Source of the DNA: Paragordius varius | Lineage: Eukaryota > Animalia > Nematomorpha | DNA length: 64,000 nucleotides | Assembly: GCA_964247055.1 (NCBI GenBank) | Contig: OZ176050.1 | Coordinates: 13,144,001-13,208,000 of the forward strand | Direction: 5' to 3' | In this document: one piece after another, positions 5,365 through 33,500 of the stretch | Layout: each line of letters starts with the position of its first letter | Numbering within the stretch: the stretch's first letter is position 1 | Notes under the pieces: generated by a model | Database searches by the model: none | What the model was told of the DNA's origin: nothing | What the model saw: the letters and a program-made list of their open reading frames with translations, nothing else | Translations under genes and position numbers: made by a program

Positions 5365-8300
5365 TTATGTGTCTGTAAGTGCCTGATACATAACTTGTTC
5401 GCACCAATCCATTAGAATTAACCACCAATAAACGTATACGCTGTAAGAGTATGCACCCGCCATATTCCCACGGCGTATATTCTCATGTATCAAATGATTT
5501 TCTGATACCCACAACAATCGGGGTGTATTTCTTTGGTTAGGGTTTGATGATAAACTATGTTCTCTGGATATATTATGTAAAGTTCCAGTTGTCGAATTAC
5601 TATATTGGACATTAGATTCTTGTATAGTATTGAAATTATTCCTATTATTATAAATTGATGTTCTCGTCTGTTTTGTTCGATTGCGACATTTACCTCGTAA
5701 CATTCGGTCAAAATCGTCACCAAGCGATTTTAAACTGGCCCCTATACCATCACACACTGCTTGAGCCTCGGGGTTCAGTTTGAGAATATTGGGAAAGAGA
5801 ACTTTATCTCTATTATTGCTGTTATTATTGATGTTTAAACTGTGGGGGGAATGGGTATGGACGTTATTTTTTGGCTGAGCAAATATTCTTTGTTCCTTTT
5901 TTATCGCTTCTTTATTTGATGGAGCAGACGGAAAATATGGACACAAGGGGGGTGTTTTATACAAATCAAAATTTAGTTGACAATTTTGATGAAGTTTAAA
6001 TAATGGATCTCTGAATCTATGGAATTTGTTTTGACAATTATTCCCGCAGCTATTTGCCTTACCTATACTTTTATGATTGGGCAACCTTAAACTAGGTATT
6101 GCGTTTTGGTAAGAATTTCTTTTCAATATATATTCTGGACGACTGTGTGAGCATTTATTAGGGCCATATCCAATGTAATTTGTGTCATTGTTATAAATTA
6201 AACTGGAAGCTGATTTTGACTTGGGTGAAGGGATAAAAGCATTTGGAGGATCTCTATTTTGATTATTACAGCATGGGAAGAAAGGAAGTTTTTCATTTTT
6301 CTTTAACAGGGTTCTTCCGTGCTGAACGTTGTAAGGGTTAAGCAAACGTGCATTTCCAACATTATTTTTATTTTTGGCGTGGTTAATGCAACAATTTTTA
6401 CATTTTGTAATTGATTTCATTGTCCTAGTTTTTTTACCAGTCAAAACGGACGATGGATATGTTTGAAGGCAGCCTTTAATTAATTTACTTTTATTTTTAC
6501 ATTGTGTTTCCTGCGTAGGGTTGACCTGGTGACACACTAAAGTAGATATATCATTGGACAATGATTCATCAAAATTTGTTGCTCTTGTTTTCGTTTCAAG
6601 GCTACTACTATTAGGGACATTTTTGACATTTAGTATCGTGTTGTCTTTTCCTTTCTTATCTTTAGTGCCATAGACATTTTGGCTTACATGTCCTACGATG
6701 CGGGGCAATGATACCAATGAAGATGTGAGTGAAATCGTTTTATTTAGATTATAATTGTTTGTTTCCTTTTCATCGTAATTGATGTTTTCGTTTTCTACAC
6801 AAGTATGTTTCAATTGTTTCAACAATCCATTTCCCCCCATCATATTTTTGTGTTGTTTCCTACGAGCATATAGTCTTGATTCCGACACATTTGACAAATT
6901 TAGACACGAGGGCAAAGTATTTTGATATGAAAGATTAACATTGTTGTAGGATATATCACATGTGGTACTAACCGTATTAGTAAATGAGGAATTAGTAGGA
7001 TAAAGCGAATTATTAATATTACAATTTGATGATCCATGGATTAAAGGTAATTCAGACACCACTGGTTGAAGAGTTTCATTGTCAAGGGGCATTTTTCCAG
7101 TCATAAAAACTGGGGGTGGTGTTTTTAGGGTTAATTCACCTTGCTGTTGATTAATTACATTTACCTCATGTCCTAAGAATTTATTGATATTCTTATTTTC
7201 ATTATTAACATTGTTATTGGTATTGCTATCTTGACAATTCAAAAAGGAGGTCACATTACGAATTTGAGTGTCATTATTATCGTGATGTGATGGTTCCCAA
7301 GTATTTGGGCAGTTTTGTAAATCCCTTTGATAGGTGATGGGGTTATGTGTCACAGTATCTAATATAAAAATTAATTTAAGACAATGTATAATAGATAGAC
7401 ATAATCAATATATATTACATAATAACATTACTTGTAAATAAGTCTCACAAAATTCAAATTATGATTATTTGAGAAACATCATAATATTTCACAATCATGT
7501 GCATTTTTAAAAATATTAATAGGGTATGATATAAAAAAATTAATTAATATAAAAGAACAACAACAAACCATTAAGCGTTAACCCACCATGTAAACCTATG
7601 TTATAAAACTTTTTGTCATTATTTATATATTTTTAAAGGAAAGGGGAAAACGAAAGGATTACATAGGTAGGCGATAGCTGATTTGAGCGCGGTAGATTAA
7701 ATGTCGTTTTTTAATGCAAAATGCAAATGCAATGCAATACTCAGCAATAAAAAAGAGACATTTTTCTCGTTAAAACAATGTGCATAAATCTTTGTTTTGA
7801 AAACATATGAAGGTGTATGTATATCCATATATATCCATATGTATATATGTGAGTGTAATTAGAGAAGTTTGCGGAGATTAATTAATATTACTACTAGCAG
7901 TTTTTCGAATTTTTAATCTGTTAATATGTTTGTTTGCGGATAAAACGTTAATTTTTCTTTGACAGAAAAAATAGTTATGGAATATATATTACCATGACTA
8001 ATCGTTTTTTTTGCTATAAATTTTTGAAAGCAAAAAAAGACTTCAAATCCGCTAAACAACATTCTAATTATTTTAGCATTGAAACGGGATAAATAACCTT
8101 AAAGGGTATTAAAAATTTTAACAGTTAAATTTTTGGTAATGTGTGAATCATATCGTATGATTGAATCAAACTAATTACACCTTATTTTCACACAAGGTTT
8201 TTTACGCGAAAATTCCAATTATTATTTTTTTGGTAGAATCACTTAAACGATTTGAGGAGGCGATAATATAAATAAATGATTGAGATTTGAATCAAATCGG

Positions 8301-11300
8301 ATTACGTTATATTTTTGGCATATAACAAAAGGGCGAATAGGTATTAAAAAAATTAAACTAAAAATATAAAAATAAATCTCGGAGAATTTTAGTAAATAAA
8401 ATTTAAACAAAACGGTTAAAAGGTTATTACTATATGTAATATTTACACACTAATTATGTCAATTTTGCTAGAAGATTGAAGCATGAATTATATTTTTCCC
8501 CTAAATATAAAAATGTTTAGTAGGGAAAGCCTGTGAATATCATCGTATCACAAAATTATGCTTGCTATTGTGCCCTAATTATTACCACCTATGTTATTGA
8601 ATGGCCTACATCCTAAATATACATAATAGAATTCTCAATCCCTATTTTATAAAATTGATGTCAGAAATGATTTATATATCAAGGATGTAGTTGTTACTGA
8701 AAGATGGTATTTCATTTTGGTATTTTAGAAAAAAAAATAGTAAATTAATTAATAAAAATTGAGAAGTTACCCGTCATAACAAGCACATAAACACTCTATT
8801 AGAGTGTTTTACCCTACTGATGGTGTAAATTTTGAGCGAGATTCGTATATCAAATCGTTATGGAACATTTTTAAAAATTTAGGCGTTTAGATTTGTAATG
8901 GTTAGGGTAAGATCCAAAACACTAGGTTACAAGTTGGAGAACAGGAAATTTTTGAAACTTACCCTGAAGAGCACTTACTGAGATATTCAGAGTGTTTTTA
9001 GACGGAGAGGTATTGTAAATTATATTTTACAGCTCATGAACATCACAAATCAATGTCAGACGATTAAGAAAAATTTGAGATCTAAGTGCACCATCTAATA
9101 ATTTCCTAGGTAATTGGTATGATAAGTGAAGTGTATTATTGAAAAATTAAAGGTAGTCAATCATCAGAAAGATTTTAGGAAATAACTTACGTAATACTAG
9201 CTTTTTATAAATTGATAGAATATGTATTAGGGGTATATTACAACCAAGGAAGTTAAGATCAAAAATGAATTATTTTGGCGTGTTAACATAAGTATTCTTC
9301 ACTTCCTTACCTTTTGGGGTTATATATTCCAGAGTAATTTTAAATCTCACCATCTCAAAAAGTATTTAAGAAATTGGGTCAAATCTAAAAATATGCATTC
9401 TTTAGCCTAGGCGCATGATAAAAATAATAAATAAATATAAAATTTTTAAAAAATCTCACCTAAAACTTCTTCGTCGCCATTTTTTCTTAAAATCGCTAAT
9501 ACTAGGAACAAATAATTGTCCAATATGGTTTCAAATATAAGTAAAATTGACTTATAATAAATTTTAGCAGCTAATTATAAAATCATTTGCCTGTTTCAAT
9601 TAAGTTTTGAAGCTACCTTTATTTAAAAAACCGTAAAAAATATAATTATTATGAACAGTGGAATTTTGATAATTAATATAAAACATATTTCAAACTTTCA
9701 AGACAGCGGTCGGGGCAAAACTACCCAAAAGAGTTAAAAATCTCCTCCATAATCATTTTGTAGCTTCTAAACTTTGGTTACTAAACCGAGGAAAAGCAGC
9801 TGATATATTGAAACCAATATTAAATGTCTTGTTTTTTATTATAATGCATACATTAAGAAAATACCATTATAGTTTTAGGTTCTACTCAACCCTGAAAATG
9901 CTGTTTTTTACAATTTCTGAGAATATTTCTTTGTGAAAATGGCCGTAAAATACAAATTCTGAATTATAAGCCAAAGCTTGAGTTTTAAATAATTTTAAAT
10001 AATCTTGATGCAATATATAACAAAAAATATATATATTATCCGTTCTTTAGTAGCAATATATGGTTTATTTTCTCTGAATGTGGGGACTACTGTGTTTATT
10101 TACCTGAAAATATACTATACACATTAGGCATGATTCATAATTGGCTAGTGTATTTTTCCAATAACCAATTATGCTTTATTTTAAATCTAAAGGTAAATAA
10201 GTGGGTTATATAAGGAATGATATGACTAATTCCAAATTCTATTAAAAATAATTTTCGAATAATATTGACTTCATTTATTGTATTAATCCAATTATAGCCA
10301 AAATGACTCATAGCTTAATTATTTGCACTAGAAATACCTTTTGATTTATTTTAATATATTGCTACAGGTTGTGTTAATTTTTTTCGAATATTTGTTCATT
10401 ATACAGTAACAATCCCTCGTAATTTGGACTCTATGGGTTGTTTTTGAATGGCGAATTATATCAAAAAAATGGGAAAAATTCAAAATCTTATAGAGCTAAT
10501 GATTATGCCATCATAATTTTATTATTTATAAGAGTTATGAAAGTTTTGGAGTTTTTTCACAATAATGATTCTTTATATTTTAAAGCCGAACAACAGAATA
10601 TAATATAAATTGTTTTTTATTTTGCCTCCAACCGTATTTTAAGTACGATTGGGCTTATAAAGTAAAAAATTTCCTTTTTCAGGATCTCGTTTATGATTCC
10701 CTTTTAAATAGTTTTGAAAATATTTTTTGTAAAAAACTATAATATAAAACCGATTGAACATTTTTTATAGAATTATTATGAACATTTAAAAGGAATAACT
10801 GGTGAAAATTGTTGATGAAATAAAAATCAAATATATGATTCCATTAAACTATTATAATTTTATTTAAATCATATTTACGAGTATTTATCGTCGTAGTACA
10901 TTTTTGGTGTTTATATTTTATCAGTTATGTTTTGAAACACAATTTCCAAATTTTTTGAATATAAAATTTTTTTATGCCATCCCTTGATAGTTTATTTAAA
11001 ACGACGCTTTTCATAAAGAGGTTTGTTAACTGTTTTAAAGAAGTTTCAAATTAGTTATTTGATTAAATATTTTTGATGTTGATATAAACTCGTAAAATTA
11101 TGAATTTAAATGATGCTCTCAATATTTATTTGTGCAATCTTGCCTTCGAAATAAATCCTTTTGTAAAACAAACATTTAATATTTTAAAGAGATTATATAT
11201 ATATATTGAATGTTCCATTGATTCATTGACCTATTTTATTTCTTGTGCATTGATTACAATTATTTTAAGTCAATTTACAAAACCAACACACAATTAACCA

Positions 11301-14300
11301 AAATACCTTTCTATCTATTTAACGAAGAAAAAAAATCATTCAATATTGTGGATTGCAAAAAACGGCATCTTATAATTATGTAGCATTGGTGATTAAAAAC
11401 GATTTAGGATTACTATTTTATTATGAGGTGAATTTTTAACCCGCTTTCAGACAATGCTGAATGAAAAATACTCAATAAGAAATATTATTTACAATCATAA
11501 TAGAGATAGAGGTTAATTTTGTGTTAAACAATACAAATTATGGAAAAATATGAAGAGAATCCCCCTTTACCAGAATCTCACGTTTAGGCTTCTTTCATAA
11601 ACTGGGTTTTAAACATCATTCTTTTTAATATTGACATTTTTAGGTTATGTGTCGGGAACATAAATATATAATATGTATGTTATTCCAATTTGACATACAA
11701 AAATTATATATTTTCTTTTCCTTACCTTTCTCGTTTTTGGCTTTAGTTATATTAACCCATATATACTATACTAACTTGTAGGATTATCTTGATTTCATTT
11801 GTTTGAATAAATACATGTCTTAACATCAAACACTTTAATAATAATAAGGTCATCTTAAAATATAATAATTAAGTAGTATGGTTAAATTAGCAGTGGATTA
11901 AAATGGTGGAATGGGCGTTATATAAATAGTAGGTTAATTTAGTTGAACAATTTTTTGATGATTTTATATTTAATTTTTTACAATCGCTTGCGCGCCTTCT
12001 ATTGTTCTTTCCTCCCATTACAAGTACATTATAACCTTTATTTGTACTTGAGTTTATTTTTGCGTCTAAAGTCAAACATTAAGATGGTAGTTTTTATGGT
12101 TAGCGCTAAATAATGATAGAGAGCAAAATAAGGTAAACCAAGTTTAATCTCAAATGATCATCTCCCCCTTACGGAAATTAATTTGGTTTAGGTTAGGTAT
12201 AACAACTAAATTAAATTTGATGGATTACGTTAATTCGGTTACACAAAATTGGCCAATGTTAAAATAGATTGGGAAAAAAAGTATAATAATTATAAAAATT
12301 GAAAGAGAAATATTATTGCTTGTAAAGATGTTTTAATTGGTGAAAGTATGCGGGTGTGCGTATAAAATTTATTTCTATTCACCAATTAAAAGACCCTATA
12401 ATCAACAATTTTCCTGCTCATTGTATAGTGTTTTATAATTTCGACTGTTATGTATGTAAAATTTTTAAGTTTGAAAGATATTGAAAAGCAAGAAGGGTCA
12501 TTGTACCTAATAAGCAAGCAAGCAAGCAAACAAACAAACAATTTGCTCTAACTTTTTAGATTCAAAATTTGAATCATATTGTTTGATGCAAGGAAAATCA
12601 TAGCTAACATTTTAATAGGTTTGGATACATTTTAAAAATTTTATACCCCTATATTTTTCCTACAGGTTTATTGGCTTGTTATTTTGTAACAGATAGTGAT
12701 CTCCCGTAGAGTTTTAACCTTTGCACTCAAATTATTTTATATTTTGCTTAGAGGCTGTTTTCTATCTTATTTTTTATTAATTTAATTTTTGCAAAAAAAC
12801 ATATAACGATATTAGTGTCTGAAAACTCCTTCACAGATAAGAGTTCATGAATGATTCATTTTGATTGTCTAAAAAAAACTCGTTTTTTTAATCCAGGTAC
12901 AATGGTAAAATGCAATATATGTTTTCAAAGACCAGCGTAATATTAATGTACAAATTTAAGTCTCCTTAAAAGTAAAATATCCAAAGGGTTGACATAATTG
13001 AATATATGTTTTTATTTCGATTAATATCCCATCCCCCTAAACATATTCTAGGTGAAAAAACCTTTAGATTTGAACTTTAAGTTATAGGGTCATCAGACAT
13101 TGAAAAAACTTTTGCCATGGTATAAAGTCAAAACGTGTTTTCCATCTTTTTTCTCAAAGTACAAATATAATTATTATGACATTGAACTGCTAGTTTTTTC
13201 GCTCAAAGACGTTAAGTGTAGGTAGGATATAAAATTTTGCATAATATTATTCAATAATAATATTACTAACTGTATGTTTTAATAAAATTTATTAATTTGC
13301 CAGTAAAATTAAGAGTAAATATATAAATCATTATTAGTAACATAAATGTAAGGATGGGAAAGAAAAGATAATTTTTCGCGCACTACAAGCAAACAACACC
13401 TGTTTAAGAATGATTTATTTTATTTTATGAGTTATTAGAGATTAAGAATTACCTTTTAAAAGTGAAAGCACTTCATACCATTTAATATTCTTAATAATGA
13501 TATTTCGCGTCTAATTTTAAGGTTAATGGACATTTTCAAGTTTTTACCAATATTTTAGCAATAATTTAATTTAACATTAAATAAATGTTTGGGAAAATAA
13601 AAGCCATCTCTAACTATCTATATAATATTATGGTAGTGTACTAATTATTTTAAAATTTTTTAATTTTTATTCATATTTTGGCAACAATATTTACTTAAAT
13701 AAGAAGGCTTCTCCTGATCATTAACAATATTAATCAAACCTGTTGATTTGTAGACAGAGATTAAAAAAGTTAAGAGCGGGAAAAGCGTGTTTATTTAATT
13801 ATATTTTATTTTTAAGGGATATTTCCCATGACACCAATAAAATACATTATCTTTACGTAATAATTGAAATTAAAACACTTGAAAATAAGTAATAAATGTT
13901 GTTAAACTCTGCTAAAGTTAATTAATGTATAAAATGATATTAATATTATATGAAAAATTAATATATAAAAATTTATGCATACCATTTTCGTGGGCTTGTG
14001 ACCATGTTAATGAGCCAATCTCGTTTGATTCATTTGAATTTAAAGAAATTTGAGGGCTATAATATGCATTAATAATTGCGGTGTTTAATAAGTCGCGTTC
14101 ACTATTTGTGTCAGAGTCTCCATAGGAGGAAGTTGACAAACTTTCGCTATTTAATTCAATGGTGCGATAATTTTTTTTAGAAGTCCATAGGGTAGATGAT
14201 GTATTAGAGTCCGTATCAGATGAATTACAAATATCATTATCAAATGAAAAAAGATTTTTTCCAGATTTGTTGGGCTTAATACGATTTGAGTTCCCGTTTA

Positions 14301-14634
14301 AACTCTTGTTTTCCAAATCTAAATTTTCGGTTCCAATATTTTTTAAAGTGTCACACTTACAATATGGTTCAAATGAGATTTGATTTGTCGGGCTTTGGGC
14401 ATAAACCGTAGATCCATTTTGATGTGGACTAAAGGATGCGTAACACGTAGCACACATGAAAGGGCTAAAATATCCACTGTCTAAATTCCCTGATATTGCC
14501 AGCTGTTTTCTTCGGTTATTTTGAGTCCTTACACAGTTATTAATTTTGCAATTAATGTTTTTGGGCATTTCTTGTAGAATTACATTTTCTACGTTTTCTT
14601 CTAATTTAGCGGTTGTCGGATTATTAGAATTCAT
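5365..14634 (-). CDS. BH3-only-like protein A (881 aa), 2 exons: 14634-13983, 7358-5365
   Basis: Exon 1 ends AAT G|gtatgc and exon 2 starts tttatattag|AT ACT GTG (phase 1, frame consistent, 2646 nt total). Contains DSGYFS (14481-14464), CATC..CKC, BH3 core IGASLKSLGDDF (5745-5710) and C-terminal YVYWWLILMDWCEQV. Motif blocks are shared with paralogue B. Gene model is well supported; function is inferred from motifs. Confidence 0.8.
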
Positions 14635-17600
14635 TAGGAGCAAATGTTGAAATGAATATATTTTAATTTTATAAGTAGAAAATTAATATTTCATCCGAAA
14701 ATCAAATAATGTTCAGGGGTCCACATTTCTAAATTAATTGAAAGGTACTTTAAAAAATATTTTTTATGAGGCAAGCAAACACATATAATGATCATTTGTA
14801 AATTAAAAGATCATTTTGTAAGCGAGAATCGGAAAAAAGGATAAAAACGTACAATAGTGTTGTGTGTAACAAAAGATCAAAATGGTTTGATCATAAGAAT
14901 TTGTAATATTTTTTTATTGAATATGTGACATTAAATAATTTTGAATTAAAAAATTATTAAAAAATAATATGGTTATTAAATATAAATTAGGAATAAAATT
15001 CTACATGAATAAAAAGTATTAACAAAATTATTGCTGATCTAATTAAAATTATTATTTGATATCAAAAAATGAGGTTGTTTATTTAGGGTAAGTGGATTTT
15101 TATTGTGCAGTTTAATTGACTGAACCATTTTTTTATTGTTCTGACCCATTATTAAAATTAAACATTTTTACAAATCGAAAAAATTATTAAACAAATATCA
15201 TTCTTGAATGCAAACATAAAAGTGTGATCAAGTAATATGATATACCCGATTATAAATATTGGCCATTAATTAATTATATTTTTAATTAATCCATTAAACA
15301 AACAAAAATGGTGATTCGATTAAATAAAAAAATTGATATATTATTAGGAAAAAATTGTTTTGATAATCAATCTTGTGCAAAGTTTATTGGCACCTAGATT
15401 TGGCGCTTAAATCGAATCAAATTAAATTTAATTTAATTCAATATTTTGGTTCATAAATATAAATATTGACCTCTCTTTCTAGCAATTATAATATATTCAA
15501 TAGTATTTTGTCTCCTGACACAATAAATTGGTGACAAAATTCGATTTTAATTTATAATTAAATTTTTGACAAATATATGTTTTAAATATAAGTTAATCCC
15601 TCTTTTACAAGACATCGGATGGTTGGTGTGTTAATTCCTACAATTATTAATTACATAGAAAGGAAAAAGGCCAACAAATATATGTCAATTTGAAGATGAT
15701 ATTATTGCATTAATTATATCAATACATATTATTTATATTTCAAAAAATAGCGAAAAAATCAAGATAATTCTTATGCAATAAGATTATTACTCAATATTCA
15801 AATTTAATGTAATAACAGATACATAATAGAGTGTTTAATAAAATAATTCAGGTATTTAATACTTATATTAACTTGACATATATTATTGTGCATGTTATAA
15901 TCATTATTATATTAATAAAAATTTGAATGATGAATATTTGATCATTTTACGATGTGTTAATGATTAATTTGCATAATCTTATAAAAAAACGTATTGTAAT
16001 TGATTTGAAAGTTTTGCATAAAGCACTCTCATTCTCTCTCTCTTATCTTGGATTGAGATCAAGTTTGACCGTACATAAATTGTTATAAATATAAATGCAA
16101 TTATGATTTACATATATATTTAATATTACATAATATAGTAATAATAAAATTAACAATATAATAACATTTATTATTACATTATTTCAATTTTGTGAAATAT
16201 GAATATATATTATATCATACTAATTTGCACACTAATCAGACAGAAAGGTCTTTTAAATCGAAACAACTTGATTGAGTGATTGATGGATAGATAGTTTTAT
16301 TACATAATTTGAATCGTATTAAATATCAGATATAATATTGCAAAATATAAGTTAGCATTTAACAGAATTATTTACTTAAGAACTGTATAGGACAATATAG
16401 GTTAACAACACAATTATTTTATCTGTTTTTTTTTCGAAAAAAAAACTTTATAAATTTTTTTGCAATATTGTATATTTAAAGAAGAGAGGGATATTTATTG
16501 CGCGTGTCAAACCTCTGAAACCTGATAATTTCCAGATAAAAAGTAGCAAAAGTAATTGTGATTAAAATGGCCTATGTTATAGACATGCGCTCGTGTCACC
16601 TATTTTTCGCTTGATTAATTTTAAGTTTTTTTTATAACAGGACAGAAAATTTTGATTTTTCTTTTATCCAATGTAATTTTTATTAACAATCCATAATTTT
16701 ACGGCAAATACAATAATCATGTTAGATAACTACCTTCTTTAAGATTGGATCTTTGGAGTTTTCATGTTATTTTTATAGTTTTATAGATAAAATATTTTTT
16801 ATACGCATGACTAATAGTATATACGCATAGTACACATAAAAATAGGTTACTTGACGCGTGTCTAATTTAAGGTAGTATAAGAATGGACAATTATAAACAT
16901 ATATGATAATGGTTAACAATAAATCTACCATGTAAAATGTATGATTTAAAGATTTTTAAAAAAGTTTTGATTTGACACCTAAAAAAACAATGTTAGTGTT
17001 AAAACAATGTTACATTAAATCAAATCTTTAATATTTTGCAAATGACTACTATATCATACTACCTAAGTAGTATGTCTCCGTTATCATATCAATACAGTAT
17101 TTGTTTGTTAAATAATATGAGACATAGTTTATTGACGCTTAGGGATGATGCAAGAAAATATTATTTAGTTATATTAAATTATTTTAACTGAATTAATAAA
17201 TGATAAAGAAATGATGTTTTGAAATAGCGCAAAAATTTCTGTTTTAAAAGCAATTTTCTGACTAACAGCTCTTAATTAGGGTTTGCTCTAAAATATTTTA
17301 TTTTCAATTTTTACAATTTTAAAAAAATCAAAAATTTATAAGCTGCACAAAAGTTATTTATCAAAATTTTGTAATCTATCGGTAGTTACACCTTATAAAT
17401 AATTAAATTCATAAAGCAATCCTTTTAGTTAAACATACATAGAATTAAATGACTCTCCAATAAAATATTTATGATTATTAATTATTAATTTACAATGATA
17501 ACCGGTAAATTGCTTAAATGTTTACAAGTATGATACATTACGGAAAAATAAACGTTGGAAACCTGCGATAAAGTTGCTCATAAAGATTGGCTTAACAATC

Positions 17601-20600
17601 GGATTATATAATAAACAGGAATATAAGTATTAAAAAATGGCAGAATTAATTATCAAAAAGACATATTTTAAAATATCAATAGACATAATTAATCGATGTA
17701 AACAGTAAACTCATATGGTTAAATGGGTTTAAAATGTTCAAAATTTGTGCCAAATATATTTTTTAGTTAATATTATGTACAATTCAGACGGAAACCAAAG
17801 AATATAAAACTTGCTAAAACACAATTAATTATTAAAGCGCTAAATAACGAATATGGGTTAATTTTAAAAATAAATAAACTTTTATCCTGGACTTATTGAA
17901 AATGATATTATATTATTTTTACAAGTATAGCTATTTTAAAAATCGACTATTTATTTTGGATTTAAAACTAAAAAATAACAGTTGTAAAACTCCATAACGT
18001 TCTTATTTTTTTTGTACACGATTACATTTCAGAGCTTATAGTCGTAAACGCACTCTTTTGAAAATTATTTAAATTATTATTTAATTATCAACCTTTTCTC
18101 CTGGATTAGCAAAATTACTATAATTTTTACAGTTTATTAAGGTTATAGTCCCGAATTCGGATAGCTCCAAAACACGATTGAAGCAAACAATTTATATTAA
18201 AATCTATAAATATCAAAAATTTGCTGGTAGAATGTATTTAAAAGCTTTCTAAAGTTAATTGTTTACAACAAACCATAAAATACAACTTATTTGCATGTTG
18301 TATTAGCGATTTAAATAAATCGTAGAAAAAAATGGAGACGAACAAGTTTTAAGACTTTTTTACAATGAATTTTTTTAAAGAAATATTTTATTAATCATGC
18401 AACCAAAAGAAAGAGTGCAAATTTTAAATTTGGCCCCATAAACATAATTTTTTAAAATATTTAATAAATAGGTATGCGGAATAAAACTACCCTAGGTCGT
18501 GAAGTGTTAAAAGTTGCAAAATGATTCTAAATATTTAATCAATCACGTCAAATATTTAGTTAGAAAGAACATTTGGCTCAAAGGTTTTATAATCAGGTAA
18601 AAACAAGAAATTTTAACATTTAATCAGAAATTAAATCAAAGCTTTCATGTAAAATAAAATTGGTAAATTTTAAATAAAGTAAAATTCACTTTTTTATAAC
18701 ATTTGAAATTAATAATTAGCCAATCTCCAGCTACACTATTTATTTAATTGTGTCATAAATTATCCAAAACTGGTGTCTGAATTTCTTCAAAAAATATTTA
18801 TTATAAATACTTCATTTTAGGATTTAAGTGCTATTATTATCCAATCTTTCGTTGTTAAATTTTGAAAAAATCAATAAAGACAAATAAATTGCATGAAGTA
18901 TTAATTACCGTTTTATCGGAAACAATAATAATTATGTGCAAGAGCACATTCAAGCGCGCACACCATCAAAAATTTGAGCCATAAAAATATTTTTTTAAAA
19001 AAAATGAAACAAAAACAAAAAGAGGCGTCTTGTCATTTTTTGTGAAAGCAATGGGTAATTGGTTTCAAAACGACGGTAAAAAAAAATATTTTTTGATAAA
19101 ATCACCATAGCGACTTTTTACGGAATACTCTACCTTTAAAAAAGCAAATTTTCTCTTAATTCACCGTTACCTTGTCTTGTGTTAGTTTTAGATTTTGTTT
19201 TCACTGAGGTACCTGATACGGGCATGCTATATAGCGCTATCTTTGCTACTTATTCACAACAATGTATATTATCCACGATACAATTATTTAAATTTATGCT
19301 AATTAGGAAGGGGACTGGACCTGAAAATTTGCTATTGTATATGCAACGCTTGTCATTTTCTATCCAAACGAAGAAAGAACCAATATTAATTAGGTTTAAA
19401 TTTGTTTATTTAAAACGTATTATTATAATTTATACCTATGCATATATGCTCTTTATAAAAGTTAAATTTATTTTTGGCGTGTGACATTTCAAGAGACAAC
19501 TTTTTAAAAATGGTTTTAAACCAAAATTAATTAATAATATTTTGACTTATGATGATGTCAATGGTAAAAACGCGTCGAAATGGAAACTATCCTTATTTAT
19601 GAGTTATAAATTTTTTAAACCAATATTCAAATTACAACTAATTAATATAAAAATATTTTTTGTGAATAATCAACGAGATGTGTCAAAAAATTACATTTTA
19701 GAAGAAAGAAAGAAAGAAAAATGATAATAAATTATTTTATACATTAAGTAGCTTGCTTAATGGGATTTTAAATAAGAGTGAAAGAAATTTAGACTTGTAC
19801 ATAATTTAATTGATTCCATTACATAATTAAATTTGTAGTATATTCTATTATTTGACTCAAAAATTTTGTAATGGCCTCCCTCTATCTAATTTGCATAAAT
19901 TTAAATATTACACATTCTGTTTTTTAAACTTATAAAAATTAATATATTGTTGTTGGGTAAAAATTACATATGTGTAAAAGTTTTAATACCATAAATGTCA
20001 TTTTGATAAAAGTTAGAGAGTGAGAGAGAGTACATGCGATTATTTTTACCATTAACTAATTTTCCATTAATTTGTTATACATTGGTTTTAATTTTTAAGT
20101 TTTTAAAAATGGGCTTAATTTTAAAAAACCAACTTTTTGAGATTATTTAATAAAATTCTTAAAAATGACCGTATTGTAAAAGAATATGTTTTACCTCATA
20201 ATATATTACAAAATCGGTAGCGATATTTGATATCATTCTACTAATAAAAAAAACTGAAGGTGAGATTGAAAGTTAGTTGTTAGAACTCAAAATGCTTTAA
20301 TTTTAATCTATATATCTGCATATTTGATTTTACGGATAAACGAATATTTTACAAGTTAAAGCACAAACCAACATATATCACAAAAAATATAATAAGGCCT
20401 TACAACTAATAAATTCCAAAACTAAGATCAACTAAGACGAGAACCGATATTTCTCAAGATTGGCCCTTCTTTGTTAAACGATTCCACAAATTTAACTTTT
20501 GTCCTTCGTTTAAAAACATTGTAAGATTCTTGCTAATCCATTATATTATGCATATGGTGGAATTTCGGCACCTTGGTTGAAATTTCATCCACAAGTCAAT

Positions 20601-20943
20601 AATTGTGACGATATCTGTTTTTTATCCTGTCTCCATATAAGTTTTTAAAACATTGTTATATGTATAATAAATATGGACATGTATATCTATATCAAAAACA
20701 TCTTAATGCGCATAAACTAAAATTAATACCTCTTAAAATATTGTGCACTTTAAAAAGTGTAAAAAAAGCAAAACAAACACTTTTATTGTTTTCTCATACA
20801 TAATTAAATACAAAACTTTTATATATCTCAAAAACGTGTTTCGATTACATAACATATAAATACCCACACTTTATTCAAATGAATTAATTTTAACCACATT
20901 TCTCTGTCTAAATCTTTTATTTTATTAAATACAAATTTGTCAA

Positions 20944-23900
20944 ATGGATCAAACTTACCAAGATTCCGAAGAAACAAGTTTTTCCTCCAATTCCAGAAGA
21001 AGAAAACGCATGATTTCAGGCAATCTCGATAGTGGATATTTTAGTCCCTACATATGTACAAAATGTTTTGGAACTTTTAATTTCTCTCAATCCGGCTCCC
21101 ATTCCAAAAGATACTGTGATTGTAACAACGAAGGGGAAGGAGATGTTTCGTCAAATCTTTTACATCAAATGTCAATTGTTTCTTCTTCTTCGGATGACAG
21201 TGAAGAGTCAAATGCTTCCCTCAAAGTACAAAAATGTAGGAGAAACCTTTTCAATTTTGATAATATTATACCTTGTTCAAACGAAACTGACATAAGCAAT
21301 ACCCTTTCCCCATCCCTAACCAGTGAAGATGAAACAACCGATGAACTAATTATTCACGAATCAACAATACCCCAATCGGATATATGTGATGGCAAACAGC
21401 AGACGACAAATAGTCACGTGCCTACCGACAAACGATCAAATTACCCAATCAAATTGAATCAAAAAACTATTACAACTAATAGAAATTTTGTCTTTAATTA
21501 TTCACAAAACGGCACAAAAAATGCCAATTTCTCTAATTTACAACCTTGTTTCTCCAATTATTTCCCCAGTAACTCATCAGGTAATTACAGTTTATTATTG
21601 AGAAAGTTTTCACAAAATTTCCCACAACTTTTCTCATACCCATGCCCATGTTTTTTATGATAAATACTTAACAAATATTGTTATCTATAATTTTCTCATT
21701 CATTAACATATTATATATTGTTATGATGCAATATAGGGAAAAACTAATTACAAAAAAATACAATATTGCTAATTTGCGCGCGAATAAGTTTTGAAAGGTA
21801 TACATTATTGTTGAAACGTGTTTTCTAGTGTCCTGTGTAATGGTCATTGTTATAAGGTATCAGAAATAAGTTTTTGCAAAGATTGATATCTAAACCTTAA
21901 TAAATCTATTGTTTGAATAATATTGAATACACCAACACTTGTTAACAAATTTTTTTAATTAATAATCATCATTAAAATCTAGTATTTTTGTGGGGTGTCT
22001 TGCGTTTACTTTTTCTCAATGTCATACCACGATGATAACACTTAAAAAGTTATTACTCTTTCGAATTTCGCTTTAGAAATATTATTTTATAATTGTGTGT
22101 ACTTTATAAATTCTCAGGGAAAAATGTTTCAATTTAAAAATTTAATGGCACAATACCCATTAAAAATGCTCCGAACATTTTTACGATTTATATGTTTTTT
22201 AATTTAATGTTGGTAAATTGGGTTGTTTAGCCACACCATATTTAATGCACAATACAATTTTCCGCAAAAATAATTCTAAATTTTTATTCAACCAACTTCT
22301 TCTTAAACGTATAAAATATTAAAACAATAACGCTCATTAATCATAAAAGTTTCCTAAAAGTCTATTTGTGATATAGTAAGTTCAATTGTTTTTATAAACT
22401 TCAAATTATTAAAGGGGTTAAATTTGAGATACGGTAAAATGAACTTTTTAAATTTTATTTTTTCTTTCGTAAATTAGAAAATAAAATTACAACAAAGATA
22501 TTATTTATATAGAGAAAAAAGTTTATGTATGTAAGCGAGAATAAAAATTGGCCTTTTTAATCTTTCATTATTCCCAATTTTTACGGTTTATTTTTTGTTT
22601 TAAACACATATTTAAAAAATCTCCATTCACCAAATATAAAACCCATATAAGCATTATCTATCAGTTAACTATAAATATAAATAATGTTATATACAAAAGT
22701 AAATTATTTAAAGTTTAAATTTTTATGAATGTCAACAAATCATATTACAATATATATACAACAATTAATCATTTTTCTCGTATAGATAGTATTAGTCATT
22801 AGCCAAATAGTATGTAAATGTTAATCCGATTATATAAATTATAATTGAATTATCTATATATGATGAATGCTCTTTCCAACCCTTAATCCTTTATATCTTT
22901 TGATTACTGATGATGACCTACAAAAATCAAATAATATGGCATTTTAAATTGGTAAAACAAAGGCTTTCTTGTACACTTCAAACAAGATAGATTTAATCTT
23001 CTTAATCTTTCTTTTAATGAATAGTCCCCTCTCCCCCCTTCCCCTCTAACCTTGTTGTCGTTCGTTATGTCCCCCTTATATTATAAGATTTTGATTTTTT
23101 ATTATAGCGAAAAAATATTGTGTATAATTCCAAATTGGGTCAAGGATGAGAAAATGATTAAGGTACTGATATACCATTTTTCCAAGCATGAGAGAATTAA
23201 TGAATGTTGTGGACACGTGCCGATATGAAACTTGTCCCTCTAATAAATATCCTATTAAACTTTTTCATCATGACCCTCTTATACTTCTTAAAAATGTTAA
23301 CGTTTTTTAAATCTGTTTGTGTGCCAATTTTAGGCAAAAATGGTTGATTAAATCCTGACTAATATATTATGAAAGGTTCAAACGGTATAAACTTATATAT
23401 ATATATATATATATATATATAACGCTGATTTTATCTAACTTACTTATAATTGCATTTTTTTATTCATTTAGATTTTCGAAATGATGACGACGGTCCCTGT
23501 AGTTCGGCAAGGTTCTTTTTTACCGAACATTTTAATCCAAACGAAAATTCCGATAAAAATATTGAGCCCGACAGAGGCTCACAAAGTTCGATAGATTCAT
23601 CACAATCGGTAGCTTTGCACAAAACATTGAATACGACACCTTCATTAAACCTATCTTCCAATTTGAATGAATCCAAATTATATTCGAGGAGACATGGAAA
23701 AACCCGTAAATTGACTTTAAAAATCTCAAACACTACCAGCCTTCAGAATAAATCAATTTCAAATATTGAAAGTATTAATCAAAAGCAAACTATTACGAAT
23801 ACACATCTTGAAGATGTTGAATCTCAAGTATTTGCTCAACCCAAATGTTTTGGGCCCAAAAACATTTCCACACCTAAAACTCATAATCATATTGGTAGTT

Positions 23901-24190
23901 CAAAAGAAGTATATGAACAAATTGGTAGTCAACTCCAATCTCTGGGTGATATTTTCCACGAAAGTCTGATAACCAATACTTCTACCCACGTTCCCCAACA
24001 AAATAATCCCCCTAAAAGATCTAGAATTTCAGTAGGGGTTTCAACCTATCAAACAACTGATATGATGTCAAATTCATACAATCAAAATCCTTCAGCTATA
24101 AACTCTGTTGATTTTACTAAATACATTTGGTGCCTGTTGGTTTTAGGGTGGTGCGAAAAAATTTGGCTTCATTCTATCCAAAACAGCTGA
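20944..24190 (+). CDS. BH3-only-like protein B (451 aa), 2 exons: 20944-21580, 23472-24190
   Basis: TCA G|gtaatt donor and cattTAG|AT TTT CGA acceptor (phase 1, 1356 nt total). Contains DSGYFS (21028-21045), CTKC..CDC, BH3 core IGSQLQSLGDIF (23921-23956) and tail KYIWCLLVLGWCEKIW. Same intron phase and following Asp codon as paralogue A. Confidence 0.8.
23394..23420. repeat. (AT)n microsatellite ~50 nt upstream of the gene B splice acceptor
   Basis: Perfect AT run. Confidence 0.9.
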
Positions 24191-27075
24191 TGATAGATAA
24201 TGAAAAAAACACTGTTTTTTATCAAATTTTGAATATTCTTATTCCTACTATTATTATATGTTGTAATTTTTTTCACAAAGCGATCTCTGCCCCATCTGCT
24301 ATGTGGCCATAAAAATTACATAATTTCAATCTCAACATTTAGCTTATCTATCAAATATTATTTTCAATGTACATATACATTTGTTAAAAATATTTTTTAG
24401 ATCTAAATATAATCTAGTGATATATGTAAAATTGGTATTTATAAATTTATAATTATGCATTTACTCACCAATTTTATAGTACATATGATATATATATCTA
24501 TAAATAATTATATTTATAACATATTATCCAAATTCATTCATTATGTTTATCAATCAAAAAATAAATTTTAATATTAAATTATAATAACTTTTTAACTTAG
24601 CGATCGATTTATGATTTTTCCGTAAAACATTTTGTAAAATTTAGCCAATCAGGTGATTTGCGTGAGGTTAAAATAGATATAATAAATATTAAAAATGGCC
24701 ACATGGTAAATAACGTTATTATCAGACGATAAAGTATTTTTAAATTGAATAATTATAGTTCTTTAAATGTGGTCTAGGATGTGATTTTGTAATCGGAAAA
24801 TTAATGAACGAATAATATATATTTTCAGTACCTAAAATAAGCGGGAACTGAAATTATGGTTATCTAAAACATAAATACACATCAATCAATATACCGTTTA
24901 TCTGAATCTATGATGTTTTAAATTAGGGGCGTCCAACACTAATCCCTTCGCGAGCCGCATTTGAAATATATATATGCATTCATAAATAAATTATTAGATT
25001 TCAAACATAAGCTCAGAGGGCGGCATCTTGGTCACTCCTGTTTTAACTCCGAAATGCTAATCTACGTCAAATTATAAACTTAAATAAATTTTTATCCTAT
25101 TTTCTCAAAATAATGTTTTATATTTTAATGTATTTTATATAGTTTTAGAATCAGTTTAATGTTGAACGTTCCACATAATTTCCATATATTCTATAATTAT
25201 ATTCTGCAATCCAAAATCCTTAATCTGGTTTCCTTTAATAATCGATTTTGCTTCCACTAGTTTGAGACCAATCGATTCACTGTAACTCATATATGGATGT
25301 AAGCTACGATTTTTAGCATTTTTGGTAATACTTTTTAACACCGTCAATAACGCAGAAGCTAATTAGTCAGCTTTAACGATAGTGGTTCGCTAACTATTGC
25401 AACATATCTATAAATACAGTATTAAAGGCATTTAGTTTGACATTTATACTTATGAAATTCTAAGCCGTACTTATTAAAAAATCGATTTAATTAATTCTTT
25501 GTGCTTTTGGACAATTGACTGTCGGGACACTTCTCTTATCTGTTATCGGGAACTATAAATTAATTATAAAATACGACGGGCCAGCGGAAACACTAGGTAT
25601 GTAATGATTGTAAGGTTAAAAAACCAATGTAAAGTTAAAAATAAATGATATATGAAATTTGTAAATAACTAATTTAGTGAAAAACCCGGGCATCATAATA
25701 TATCGTAAACGTATAAAGTATGGTTCTTCATAGAAATTTGAATATGCAATGTCTAAAACAAATGGCTTAAGACTAACGCTTAAAAGCGCATATTGAACAA
25801 ATTAATATTTTTAACAATCAATCGATTTTCAAGCCCAAAAGGTTTATCATAAAATGGCATCGAATCTTTTAGTTTTGGGCACATGTTCAAACATATCTGC
25901 GGATATTTTACACAGTCGTATGACAGTAAATGTATATAATCTGTAGCATCTTTATTCTATATGTTTTCCGAGATATTGTTTTTACATCAACATTTAGACC
26001 TTATGTCTGATTTTAATTACAAGATTTCTTTTTTTAAATAAATTGGGAGTATTTGTAAAATTTATATAATAACCACTGCAATAACGAGAGTTGTTATTGG
26101 CCTTATTGATATTTTAATGTTTGTTTATATAAGTTACATATTTAAAAATTTGTGGAGACGGTTAAATTAAATATTTAAACAATATGAGTTGAATGTGTAA
26201 ATAATAAAATCAAAACATCCTTATAAACATATAAATGCCCTTTTAACCAATTAATAACTAAGATCACCAACAATAGCTCGTTCTTCTAACAATAGATTGA
26301 CTATAATTAATATAAAAACCAATTTATCTACTTTTTTCCCAAACATCTAGGCTGTAGAGTCTTATTTAAGTTTAATTAATTCAAAATGCTATCTAAGCCT
26401 TTTCAAAAACATCACATATAAATTAATGTATGAATGGCAACCGCTTGAGTCTCCGGATAGTTTCAAGTACTTTTATTTTATTAATCATCCGTTTGACAAA
26501 TTTAGTAGTATCATTTCCACCTTTGCAATCCATTAGAAAAAATATTTATAATATATAGTTATATAATTCCTGCTTTTATCCAATTAATTTTAAATTGTTA
26601 TATGCAAATATTAACGGCTATTTAGATTATTCTGACCAATTGCTTTAGATGATATCTTTATAGTAAACTGACAATTTTTTATTGGGGAATTTAGTAATTT
26701 ATTTGGTAACAGAACTTTAGGCCCCGATAAAAACCGCCTACCATGATATGTTTCTCAGGATTAAATCATTATCGAGTTAAAAAAGAAACTTTGATATTTA
26801 ACACCAATGAATGTATAAAAAACATTGCATTGGTAAATTTTCGAGTCAATTGCTATACATAAAATTTTTAATATATACACAAATTATTCTTCAATTTAAT
26901 GATAGCTTTAAATTGTTTAAAGATATTGTTAAATAAAATTGTTTGTTAAAATTTATCCAAAGTTAGTAAGTACTTTTAAATAAATCATTGGAAATTTATA
27001 AAGTTGTACTAATATCAGCTAATATGAAACTTTAGCAATATTTAAAATTCAAACATTTTGACAGTTTCATATTGT

Positions 27076-30518: not shown

Positions 30519-33500
30519 ATGGGCCGTAGATCAAAATCACGATCAAGGAGTAAGGAGCGTAAAAAGGAAAAGTTATAATACTTTGTAAATTATAGGAAGC
30601 ACAAAGATCACAGAAAGACTTCAGATAAAGATTATCATCATAAATCGTCAAAATCGTCTCATGCAGATAAAGAACGCACATCTGAAAAATCGAAACATAT
30701 GCCCGCCAAAATAACAAAAGGTTTTATTGTATAATAATTTTAGATATCAAATTAGCTTCAAATCCAGATAACCCATTAGAAAAAGTGAAAATAATGGATT
30801 CATTAAATTCCACAGGATTTAGCTCTCAAAGCTTTGTATCTTCCAAGGTATTGATATTTTAAATTAAATTATTTTTCAAAATTGCATAATTTTCTCGAAT
30901 CACTAAGTATATTGCACTCTTGACAAGATTTAGAAATGAAATTTTACCGAGCGTTTATTAATATATATACAAATTGAAATAATTAATTAAAAATTTTGAA
31001 GAATCAATATTTTTCGTTGATATGCATATAATTGTTCTTCTATTATCCCTTAAACAGCAGGGGTGGTTTGACTTACATTATATTTTTAATTTAACCATTT
31101 TTTTCCGTCAACTATGTATAACTATCCTAAAATATTTACTTACATGTGCAATAAATTGATTAATATGCCGTTGGTCTCCTAATCATATAAATTAAAACCT
31201 TATATTCTGTGGTCCGTATCATTTCATTTAATTACAACTTAAATAATGGGTTATCATAGTGGCCAACTATTACAAAATATTATTTCCTGACATCAAACCC
31301 AGGTATATCGAGATGTATCAAATAGCAGACCAAGGTCGCCACTGTCCACAAAAGATGTCCCTTGCTGCACTTCCATACACCATTCAATGGTGGTTCAAAA
31401 ACAACCACCTAGTTGCGTCCGGGCTGAGGTTAGGTTTAAGGATATAATGATACGTTATAAATGAATAAATTAATGTTGTTTCATTTTTGATGAGAATTAA
31501 TGTTTAAATTGCCTAGCTTTCCTATGTTGGTAAGTTAGGCCAACACATGAAATAATTAGGTAAAACCTTATTTTCTATATGTTGCACCCTATTTGCACAT
31601 TAATACCTGTAATGATATAGCATTGTTATACAAGCTGTGAGTAATGTCATTATTGTGTTATTCATCCAGATATTTTTACCATATCTGGGTGCTGATATTC
31701 CACTGTTTATAGGCCTATCCGTTGGGTCGGTACCTGTGCATATGGAAAATTATCTGGATTCTCTGTCCGTTGCCCTCCATCTGGCCTCACGTCTTTGCGC
31801 TCTGCTCGCTACCAGGCGACGCAGGCGCTTTTGTAATCTTTTGCCTTTATATAACTCGATTTCCTCGATGAGTTCATTTCGTATTTTATCGCTTAGAGAT
31901 TTTATGTACTTAAGACTGCATCAATGATTCTATCGTGCAATTCTACCATACTATGATCGTTTATATTTCCATTGATCTTTACCCATATTCCATTCCAGTG
32001 CCTTTAAAGGCAAATGTTTACATGTGTGATAAAGAATGAGTGTTTAGGTTGCTTAGCTATACCATTTGCACTTCAAGAGTGTCCTTGAACACTTCAAGTT
32101 GGTCCTTGAACAATTCAAGTTGGTTCTTGAAAACTTCAAGTTGGTCCTTAAAATTTATAAATTTTAATTTAACCATAATTTTTGCATTTATTTTTTTATT
32201 TTATTATTTATTAACCTAATTTTCTTTATTTATTATATTTATTCATTTAAAAATAAAATTTTTAATTTAAAAAACTATTTTGTTTCAAACTATTTTTTTT
32301 CAATTAAACAAAATTGTTGACGTTTAAATGTTTTTAATGAAAAATATTAATTAACCCAGAAAACTTATATATTTTTTCATTTCGTGGTAAAATATTATAA
32401 ATATCCAAAATTATTTAAAAAATTAATAAAGATATACGGTTTCTCAAAGATTAAAAGTTGATATCGATTAAAAATTCATGTTATAAAAGAAAATAGGTTA
32501 ACAATAAAATAGATGAAATATTTACGATTTGAATGATAAAAGTTAAAAACTAAACAAAAAAGTCAAAGGACCAGCTTGAAGTGTTCAAGGACCAACTTGA
32601 AATGTTCAAGAACCAACTTGAATTGTTCAAGGTCCAACTTGAATTGTTCAAGGACCAACTTGAATTGTTCAAGGACCAACTTGAATTGTTTAAGGGCCAA
32701 CTTGAACTGTTCAAATTCCAAATTGAAGTGTTCAAGGACACTCTTGAAGTGCAAATGGTATATCTCAGGCCGGTAACTTCTTAGCCCAATACAAAACCTA
32801 TTTATGATTCACACATAGCCATATCCAAAAATAATAAGAGTAAGTCCTACATTCTATATGTTAAACCCTGTGCGTATTAATACGTGTAATGATAGCATAA
32901 TTGTTCAAGGGGGTAAATAATGTCATTAGTGTCCTAGTCATCCAAATATTATCATTATATCTGGTTGTAGGTGTGTCATTAGGGTCAGTGTTTGGGGCTA
33001 TGGGTAATAGTCGGGAATCCCTGTTGGTTGACCTTCTTCTAGCCTCCCGTGTTCGCGCTCTAGCTCGCTCTAGGCGACGCAAGCGCTTTCGTTCTCTTTT
33101 GTCTTTATATGACACGATTTCTTCTTCGATAAGTTCCTTCTTTACTTTCCCGCTCAGGTGTTTCCAGGTCCCATTCACCACTGCATCAACGAATCTCTTA
33201 TCGGATAATCCTACGCGGTTCATGAATAGCGCAATTCTTCCATACCATGATCGTTTGTATTTCCAGTGCGCGTTATCCAACTTCCATTCCAATGTGTCTC
33301 GCAGGGGGCTCCTAAAATTATGACTAATTCGATGGGCCATTATGTTCAGACCAGCTAGGGGAATAGCTAGGCGTATGGGTAGCATCATTGTTTTTTTGTG
33401 GAGGTAGCAAGTGGGTAGTTGTGAGTTTTTTGACGGCGCGTATGTTTCGCCAGTGATGCGTCGGAGGCATTTATTTATGAAAACCTGTATTTTTCGGGTG

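Follow-up and report, generated by a model that had tools for sequence, protein, structure and literature searches.

Two divergent paralogous genes of the horsehair worm Paragordius varius encode candidate BH3-only proteins with a Bim-like layout

Among moulting animals (Ecdysozoa), proteins whose only Bcl-2 homology motif is the third one (BH3), the BH3-only proteins, are on record from two sources only, Caenorhabditis (EGL-1, CED-13) and, with sayonara since 2023, the higher flies; in other nematodes and insects they have not been found according to reviews (PMC8998228; PMC10107002). Most BH3-only proteins are regarded as mutually unrelated (PMC10107002), and published searches with EGL-1 as the query retrieved nothing outside nematodes (PMC8998228). 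Here we analyse a window of 64,000 nucleotides from the horsehair worm Paragordius varius (Nematomorpha; assembly GCA_964247055.1, contig OZ176050.1, positions 13,144,001 to 13,208,000 of the forward strand; coordinates below are those of the window), which holds two head-to-head genes, gene A on the minus strand and gene B on the plus strand. Both encode long, low-complexity proteins with one BH3-like core and a hydrophobic C-terminal helix. Judged from the sequence and from structural models, A and B may be lineage-specific apoptosis initiators of the BH3-only type with a Bim-like layout, a reading which we consider about evenly poised between right and wrong.

In the described systems the elements in question are short. 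The published BH3 sequences of Bim and Bmf are IAQELRRIGDEF and IARKLQCIADQF (PMC5691656; PMC9171138), and the published Bim degron is 90-SRSSSGYFSF-99, the SGYFS core of which also occurs in DEPTOR (PMC10317156). The C-terminal sequence of Bim binds peripherally, and neither it nor the C-terminal sequence of Bmf, NQNRVWWQILLFLHNLALNGEENRNGAGPR, is predicted to be transmembrane or a tail-anchor (PMC11346437). Proteins A and B resemble BimEL in that they are predicted to be disordered and present the same order of elements: the SGYFS degron core, followed by I-[AG]-x-x-L-x-x-[IL]-G-D-x-F and last by a hydrophobic C-terminal helix that is not predicted to be transmembrane. They differ from Bim by the absence of any match to PF06773 Bim_N or PF08945 Bclx_interact (E up to 10) and of the dynein-light-chain (DYNLL1) motif K-x-T-Q-T, as neither protein contains TQT. 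They are also 2-4 times longer, the spacing between BH3 and tail is 53-90 residues whereas in Bim it is about 20, their N-terminal Cys cluster has no counterpart in Bim, and their BH3-like core and tail lie on one exon. The likeness to Bmf lies in the motif, where I-A-x-x-L-Q-x-I-A-D-x-F-H of Bmf compares with I-G-x-x-L-Q-x-L-G-D-x-F-H of gene B, and in the Trp-rich C-terminal helix, where VWWQILLF of Bmf compares with VYWWLILM of gene A (PMC11346437). In contrast to Bmf, A and B have no PF15185 match and no TQT, are much longer and carry a degron module that is not known in Bmf.

The invertebrate systems are more distant in layout. EGL-1 and CED-13 of Caenorhabditis are, as A and B would be, BH3-only proteins of ecdysozoans. 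EGL-1, for which we take the similar core IGSKLAAMCDDF, has about 100 residues and is not known to possess a C-terminal hydrophobic helix or a degron module, and A and B have no match to PF11430. Outside the nematodes, the sole BH3-only protein so far reported for an ecdysozoan is sayonara of Drosophila (CG14044), a coiled-coil protein (Panther PTHR21974) in which two coiled-coil domains flank the BH3; this BH3, a linear motif, is confined to Muscomorpha and is held to be lineage-specific and convergent (PMC10107002). Sayonara was ruled out as a relative, since it belongs to a coiled-coil family while A and B are predicted to be disordered, without a predicted coiled coil, and to end in a hydrophobic tail helix. 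The echinoderm candidates, which are Bim/Bad/Bmf-like, 350-373 residues long and disordered, await experiments (PMC8998228). They are comparable to A and B as long, predicted-disordered invertebrate proteins proposed on the basis of a motif, with the BH3 on a single exon (PMC8998228); they were, however, found by BLAST with human Bim, Bad and Bmf, whereas A and B are found by no sequence search.

The evidence that carries the proposal is the BH3-like core of each protein:

5710..5745, minus strand: BH3-like core of gene A, IGASLKSLGDDF, residues 756-767, 18.7 bits.
23921..23956, plus strand: BH3-like core of gene B, IGSQLQSLGDIF, residues 363-374, 14.2 bits.

A first-pass annotation of the window, made from the letters alone, had placed a 12-residue core in each protein and fitted both to the BH3 pattern. 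Read from the DNA, IGASLKSLGDDF indeed lies at 5745..5710 (minus) and IGSQLQSLGDIF at 23921..23956 (plus), and the strict regular expression has one match in each protein. The BMF string that the annotation gave for comparison agrees with the published peptides, and so does that of BIM. Both cores show the BH3 hallmarks, with hydrophobic h1-h4 at i, i+4, i+7 and i+11, h2 being Leu, and with small residues following h1 and preceding the invariant Asp. The definition phi1-sigma-x-x-phi2-x-x-phi3-sigma'-D-Z-phi4-gamma (PMC10107002) describes both cores, with Ile at Z in gene B as the sole exception.

The strict pattern appeared in 0.09-0.15% of shuffles, and the six-frame translation of the window, 127,996 residues in all, contains no match besides those in A and B. 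A 16-column matrix, built from the ten validated BH3 peptides printed in PMC5691656, gave 18.7 bits for A and 14.2 bits for B, where the ten real motifs scored 10.3-32.4 bits when each was left out in turn. The next-best positions within the same proteins reached -1.4 (A) and 3.0 bits (B), and the observed score was reached by none of 3000 shuffles of A and by one of 3000 of B. Among 28,432 positions in the open six-frame pieces of the window the two cores rank first and second, the third scoring 8.6. IG..L.SLGD.F is also the best-conserved block of the C-terminal halves. On this sequence evidence the motif match is strong for a single protein and not decisive at the scale of a proteome.

The surroundings of the motif were modelled with AlphaFold2 on single sequences without an alignment, which gives modest confidence (mean predicted local distance difference test score, pLDDT, 36-48). 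Asn, Ser and Thr make up 33-35% of the residues of both proteins, and B has pLDDT below 50 throughout residues 1-354, so the low complexity and probable disorder named in the first-pass annotation hold. The model of B contains two helices only, 356-380, which spans the motif (363-374), and 427-450 (pLDDT 71-81). The model of the C-terminal 174 residues of A shows a helix at 40-81, most confident where it covers the motif at 49-60 (pLDDT 68-73), and another at the terminus (143-172). Outside the helices, both models have pLDDT below 50. No coiled coil is predicted in the C-terminal piece of A or in B, and there are no long helices besides the BH3-like and tail helices. No BH1, BH2 or BH4 motif, no Bcl-2 domain by Pfam and no Bcl-2 fold in the models was found, in agreement with the earlier remark that no other BH motif was present. 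The tail helices are as follows:

5368..5463, minus strand: Trp-rich C-terminal hydrophobic helix of gene A, residues 850-881, containing WWLILMDWCE.
24113..24187, plus strand: C-terminal hydrophobic helix of gene B, residues 427-451, containing WCLLVLGWCE.

The hydrophobic W..L....WCE segment that had been claimed for both C-termini is there, as a W.L....WCE block in both proteins. The best 19-residue Kyte-Doolittle means of the tails are 0.8 (A) and 1.16 (B). Because of this low hydropathy and the conserved acidic residue of WCE inside the segment, the tails are not canonical transmembrane or tail-anchor segments. Of the disordered, single-helix, membrane-tail layout that had been proposed, the disorder, the motif helix and the hydrophobic tail helix were therefore retained, and a canonical transmembrane anchor was not.

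The two genes were read from the DNA as two exons each (slashes mark the exon borders):

13983..14634, minus strand: gene A exon 1, ATG at 14634, residues 1-217 and base 1 of codon 218, donor G/GTATGC.
7359..13982, minus strand: gene A intron, 6.6 kilobases (kb), GT..AG, phase 1, acceptor TTATATTAG/ before 7358.
5365..7358, minus strand: gene A exon 2, residues 218-881 and the stop codon at 5365-5367.
14635..20943, no strand: intergenic region, 6.3 kb between the divergent start codons.
20944..21580, plus strand: gene B exon 1, ATG at 20944, residues 1-212 and base 1 of codon 213, donor CAG/GTAATT.
21581..23471, plus strand: gene B intron, 1.9 kb, GT..AG, phase 1, acceptor TTCATTTAG/ before 23472.
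23472..24190, plus strand: gene B exon 2, residues 213-451 and the stop codon at 24188-24190.

The predicted product of gene A (exons 14634..13983 and 7358..5365) has 881 residues and that of gene B (exons 20944..21580 and 23472..24190) has 451. The second exons lie in open reading frames (ORFs) of 662 residues (5365..7353, minus) and 246 residues (23450..24190, plus), the first exons in ORFs of 241 and 238 codons (13918..14643, minus, and 20944..21660, plus). In gene A and gene B alike the phase-1 intron splits an Asp codon as G/AT, and the frame is restored at both joins. The position and phase of the intron are common to both paralogues, and its lengths are more than threefold apart (6.6 and 1.9 kb). 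Either gene may have extra 5' exons or micro-introns. Chance cannot credibly account for a frame that stays open over 662 codons at the 27% G+C of the window.

The earlier annotation had described a divergent pair of related genes, and the comparison of their products bears this out. The exon 1 products are clearly paralogous (BLASTP E 9e-15), and the exon 2 products are weakly similar to each other (E 0.002-0.003). Seven short colinear blocks are common to A and B, namely ISGNLDSGYFSP, CxxC...CxC, NLF(S/N)FDN, LNLS..ES(R/K)LY(A/S)RR, FAQPK, IG..L.SLGD.F and W.L....WCE. Further blocks are located as follows:

14461..14496, minus strand: gene A block ISGNLDSGYFSP, containing DSGYFS, residues 52-57.
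21013..21048, plus strand: gene B block ISGNLDSGYFSP, containing DSGYFS, residues 29-34.
14236..14256, minus strand: gene A block NLFSFDN, with FxF.
21244..21264, plus strand: gene B block NLFNFDN, shared block.
6859..6903, minus strand: gene A block LNLSNVSESRLYARR, shared exon 2 block.
23645..23692, plus strand: gene B block LNLSSNLNESKLYSRR, shared exon 2 block.
5869..5883, minus strand: gene A block FAQPK, shared block.
23831..23845, plus strand: gene B block FAQPK, shared block.

Within the shared blocks, 18 of the 38 identical residues are encoded by different codons, and the comparison of promoters and introns between the paralogues gave AT-rich noise only, without shared non-coding similarity. 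Therefore, the duplication is old and the blocks have been maintained at the protein level. There is no third paralogue within the window.

Variation at the locus was read from public DNA contigs of three samples and two labelled organisms (90-100% identity), passing over 23385-23429 as a repeat. Among the length differences listed, the frame is preserved by those in exon 1 (+AAC; +T with +AA two bases away), whereas of the ten listed for non-coding DNA nine are not divisible by three. The listed exon substitutions, 4 synonymous and 7 non-synonymous, number 11 and are too few for a ratio of non-synonymous to synonymous rates; the non-synonymous variants listed cluster in an unconserved stretch, and within the codons for DSGYFS the variant of gene B, at 21045, is a synonymous one.

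In both proteins conservation is highest in an N-terminal module (14236-14496, minus; 21013-21264, plus). It consists of RRK..ISGNLDSGYFSP, CxxC followed by CxC 16-27 residues further on, and NLF(S/N)FDN; Pfam gave it no match, and its language-model neighbours were uninformative. DSGYFS fits the beta-TrCP phosphodegron consensus DpSGXX(X)pS (DSGxxS). By the presence of the motif, it is a candidate degron upstream of the BH3-like core. The FSF beside the BimEL degron is reported to be a DEF-type ERK docking site (Ley and colleagues, 2005). NLF(S/N)FDN resembles this FSF and may be a parallel to it.

Protein language-model neighbours were searched in the ESM-Atlas with the C-terminal 238 residues of B and the C-terminal 250 residues of A, the N-terminal exon of B being the control; by rule, a score below 0.9 was taken as a lead only. 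Both C-terminal halves returned the same list of neighbours. At the top stand two unnamed arthropod clusters (247 residues, 119 members; 246 residues, 61 members) at 0.83-0.87, and next come PF15185 BMF, PF08945 Bclx_interact (Bim), PF15826 PUMA, PF12201 (BIK) and PXT1 at 0.77-0.86. Bim clusters are among the neighbours, and the BMF cluster is the best named one (0.85-0.86). The control returned unrelated unnamed and zinc-finger clusters, none of them BH3-only. The two unnamed arthropod clusters might represent an unrecognised arthropod family of BH3-only-like proteins.

We favour the reading of A and B as initiators because of the motif, the lack of another BH domain, the disorder, the location of the motif in one of two predicted helices and the hydrophobic C-terminal helix. 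If it is correct, the amphipathic helix I-G-x-x-L-x-S-L-G-D-x-F would dock in the hydrophobic groove of the animal's Bcl-2-family proteins, with Ile, Leu, Leu and Phe filling pockets h1-h4 and Asp pairing with the conserved Arg of the groove. The outcome of such docking would be a survival protein neutralised or, alternatively, a Bax/Bak-like one activated. The Trp-rich C-terminal helix could provide membrane retention or a second contact, as do the C-terminal sequences of Bim and Puma, and the N-terminal DSGYFS could, when phosphorylated, be a degron for beta-TrCP and so hold protein levels down in healthy cells, the role of SSGYFS in BimEL. Binding, membrane association, regulated turnover and killing by A and B are thus activities that we infer. 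The first-pass annotation had seen in the pair an unannotated apoptosis-initiator family of the Bim/Bmf/EGL-1 type. Every BH3-only feature that can be recognised in silico is present, and this half of the proposal is plausible; homology to the Bim/Bmf/EGL-1 family is not supported (no Pfam match, no phmmer match, no TQT). As far as sequence families go, the relation of A and B to Bim, Bmf and EGL-1 is one of 'works like' and not of 'is a'.

A number of observations weigh against the initiator reading, and most of them would equally suit disordered lineage-specific regulators with another job, in which helix and tail bind some other partner or organelle and the likeness to BH3 is due to chance. 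No relative could be found: Pfam up to E 10 gave no match for the exon products and the C- and N-terminal pieces, an exhaustive phmmer search of B against 1.84 billion representatives gave none at E <=0.001, the PDB chains gave no accepted match to a 48-residue profile or a single sequence (the lone match, ribosomal protein S27, was rejected at E 1.9), and a word-indexed database gave none to residues 470-662 of the A ORF, to full-length B or to an alignment of the two C-terminal modules. Looking up the exon-1 ORF of gene B by exact identity likewise gave no match. At the sequence level the protein family is an orphan, without homology to any BH3-only family. BH3 patterns alone are of little predictive value (PMC9171138), survival proteins are bound by many human peptides that are not from BH3-only proteins (PMC4072508), and such patterns yield many false positives (PMC9171138; PMC4072508). 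A proteome of several million residues could contain chance windows at 14-19 bits, and the present finding comes from a genome-wide scan, in which some such windows are expected somewhere. Gene B has Ile (D-I-F) at a position where an acidic or polar residue is usual in BH3s, the tails carry Asp/Glu, have low hydropathy and are not transmembrane, and the linkers between motif and tail (53-90 residues) are longer than in Bim or Bmf. All ESM-Atlas scores (0.77-0.87) lie below 0.9, and the neighbours may be driven by the motif itself. The gene models are based on DNA: among the runs listed as covering the stretch none is RNA, and the contigs of all four runs used are DNA without spliced joints. 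The 7 non-synonymous against 4 synonymous exon variants among those listed imply that most of the protein evolves freely. One would argue further that a DSG degron and a Cys cluster fit a short-lived signalling or cell-cycle protein, and that the best-conserved N-terminal module has no BH3-only counterpart except the five residues SGYFS. However, the motif is the most conserved C-terminal block, lies in one of the two predicted helices and is followed by a hydrophobic helix; BH3-only families are the nearest named neighbours of both C-terminal halves and not of the control; and the matrix scores are within the range of validated motifs. A chance likeness is thus a doubtful explanation, although a quite possible one.

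At the other end, A and B could be true orthologues of Bim and Bmf, descended from a bilaterian ancestor that had the SGYFS degron, the BH3 and the hydrophobic tail, and diverged past detection. The order of elements is that of BimEL (SGYFS, BH3, hydrophobic C-terminal helix), VYWWLILM in the tail of gene A recalls VWWQILLF of Bmf (PMC11346437), the nearest ESM-Atlas neighbours include BMF and BIM clusters, and the echinoderm Bim/Bad/Bmf-like candidates of 350-373 residues (PMC8998228) would fit such an ancestry. We consider orthology unlikely nevertheless: there is no Bim_N, Bclx_interact or BMF match in Pfam and no phmmer match, TQT is lacking, the BH3 and the tail share one exon, and the elements in common are all short linear motifs, which arise convergently, most BH3-only proteins being unrelated (PMC10107002). 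A related and equally improbable conjecture is that an initiator of Bim type (BH3 helix, hydrophobic C-terminus, SGYFS phosphodegron) was present in the ecdysozoan ancestor and was kept by the horsehair worms and possibly also by arthropods, there as the two clusters of about 247 residues, the sparse sets of Caenorhabditis and Drosophila then reflecting secondary losses and replacements. One could finally take the two frames for something non-functional, be it ORFs that arose by chance, pseudogenes in decay or pieces of transposable elements, given that they are of low complexity, match no database protein and are covered by DNA contigs alone. A 662-codon frame at this base composition is difficult to reconcile with such a view, as are the blocks, the intron phase and the splice signals that were kept despite saturated synonymous sites, the length differences of exon 1 that, among those listed, keep the frame across populations, and the absence from the window of a third copy and of any transposon domain. 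Hence the non-functional reading is hardly credible.

Should the initiator reading be true, the horsehair worm would be the third ecdysozoan lineage with BH3-only proteins, here ones that combine a tail and a Bim-like degron with a canonical motif, and A and B would supply ready peptides for studying the evolution of the upstream trigger of mitochondrial apoptosis in moulting animals. Homology searches all miss genes of this kind, which language-model features, together with motif and architecture, make recognisable. The two unnamed arthropod clusters are flagged here as worth examining.

Several features of the window accompany the main subject. The gene A intron contains no ORF of at least 70 residues, and the intergenic region 14635..20943 is without another sizeable ORF and without a conserved non-coding block. 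No full copy of a p53 response element occurs within the window, and the one copy of the FOXO core between the genes is meaningless in DNA so rich in AT. In the gene B intron, about 50 bases upstream of the acceptor, a (TA)n microsatellite occupies about 23396-23421, and contigs break there. Over 20000-24800, one sample that carries the same organism label gave contigs of only 90-99% identity to the window, which have many substitutions, insertions and deletions and break just past the gene B BH3-like core (loose end 23979). Their sequence points to a divergent population or a cryptic species.

Two further regions lie away from the gene pair. At 32861-34753 there is a G+C-rich island (35-37%, with about 26% around it) with duplicated ORFs on both strands, which share WQSK.VGLKLKL..FKCLI..RIT..ISIWR.THKHTRKIQVFINKC.RRITG and have no Pfam match; its sequence suggests that a repeat, or a retroelement tail, lies there in rearranged copies. 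At 51814-54057, on the minus strand, ORF fragments match animal haem peroxidase PF03098 (E 5e-07 and 1.5e-09) and belong to a multi-exon peroxidase gene.

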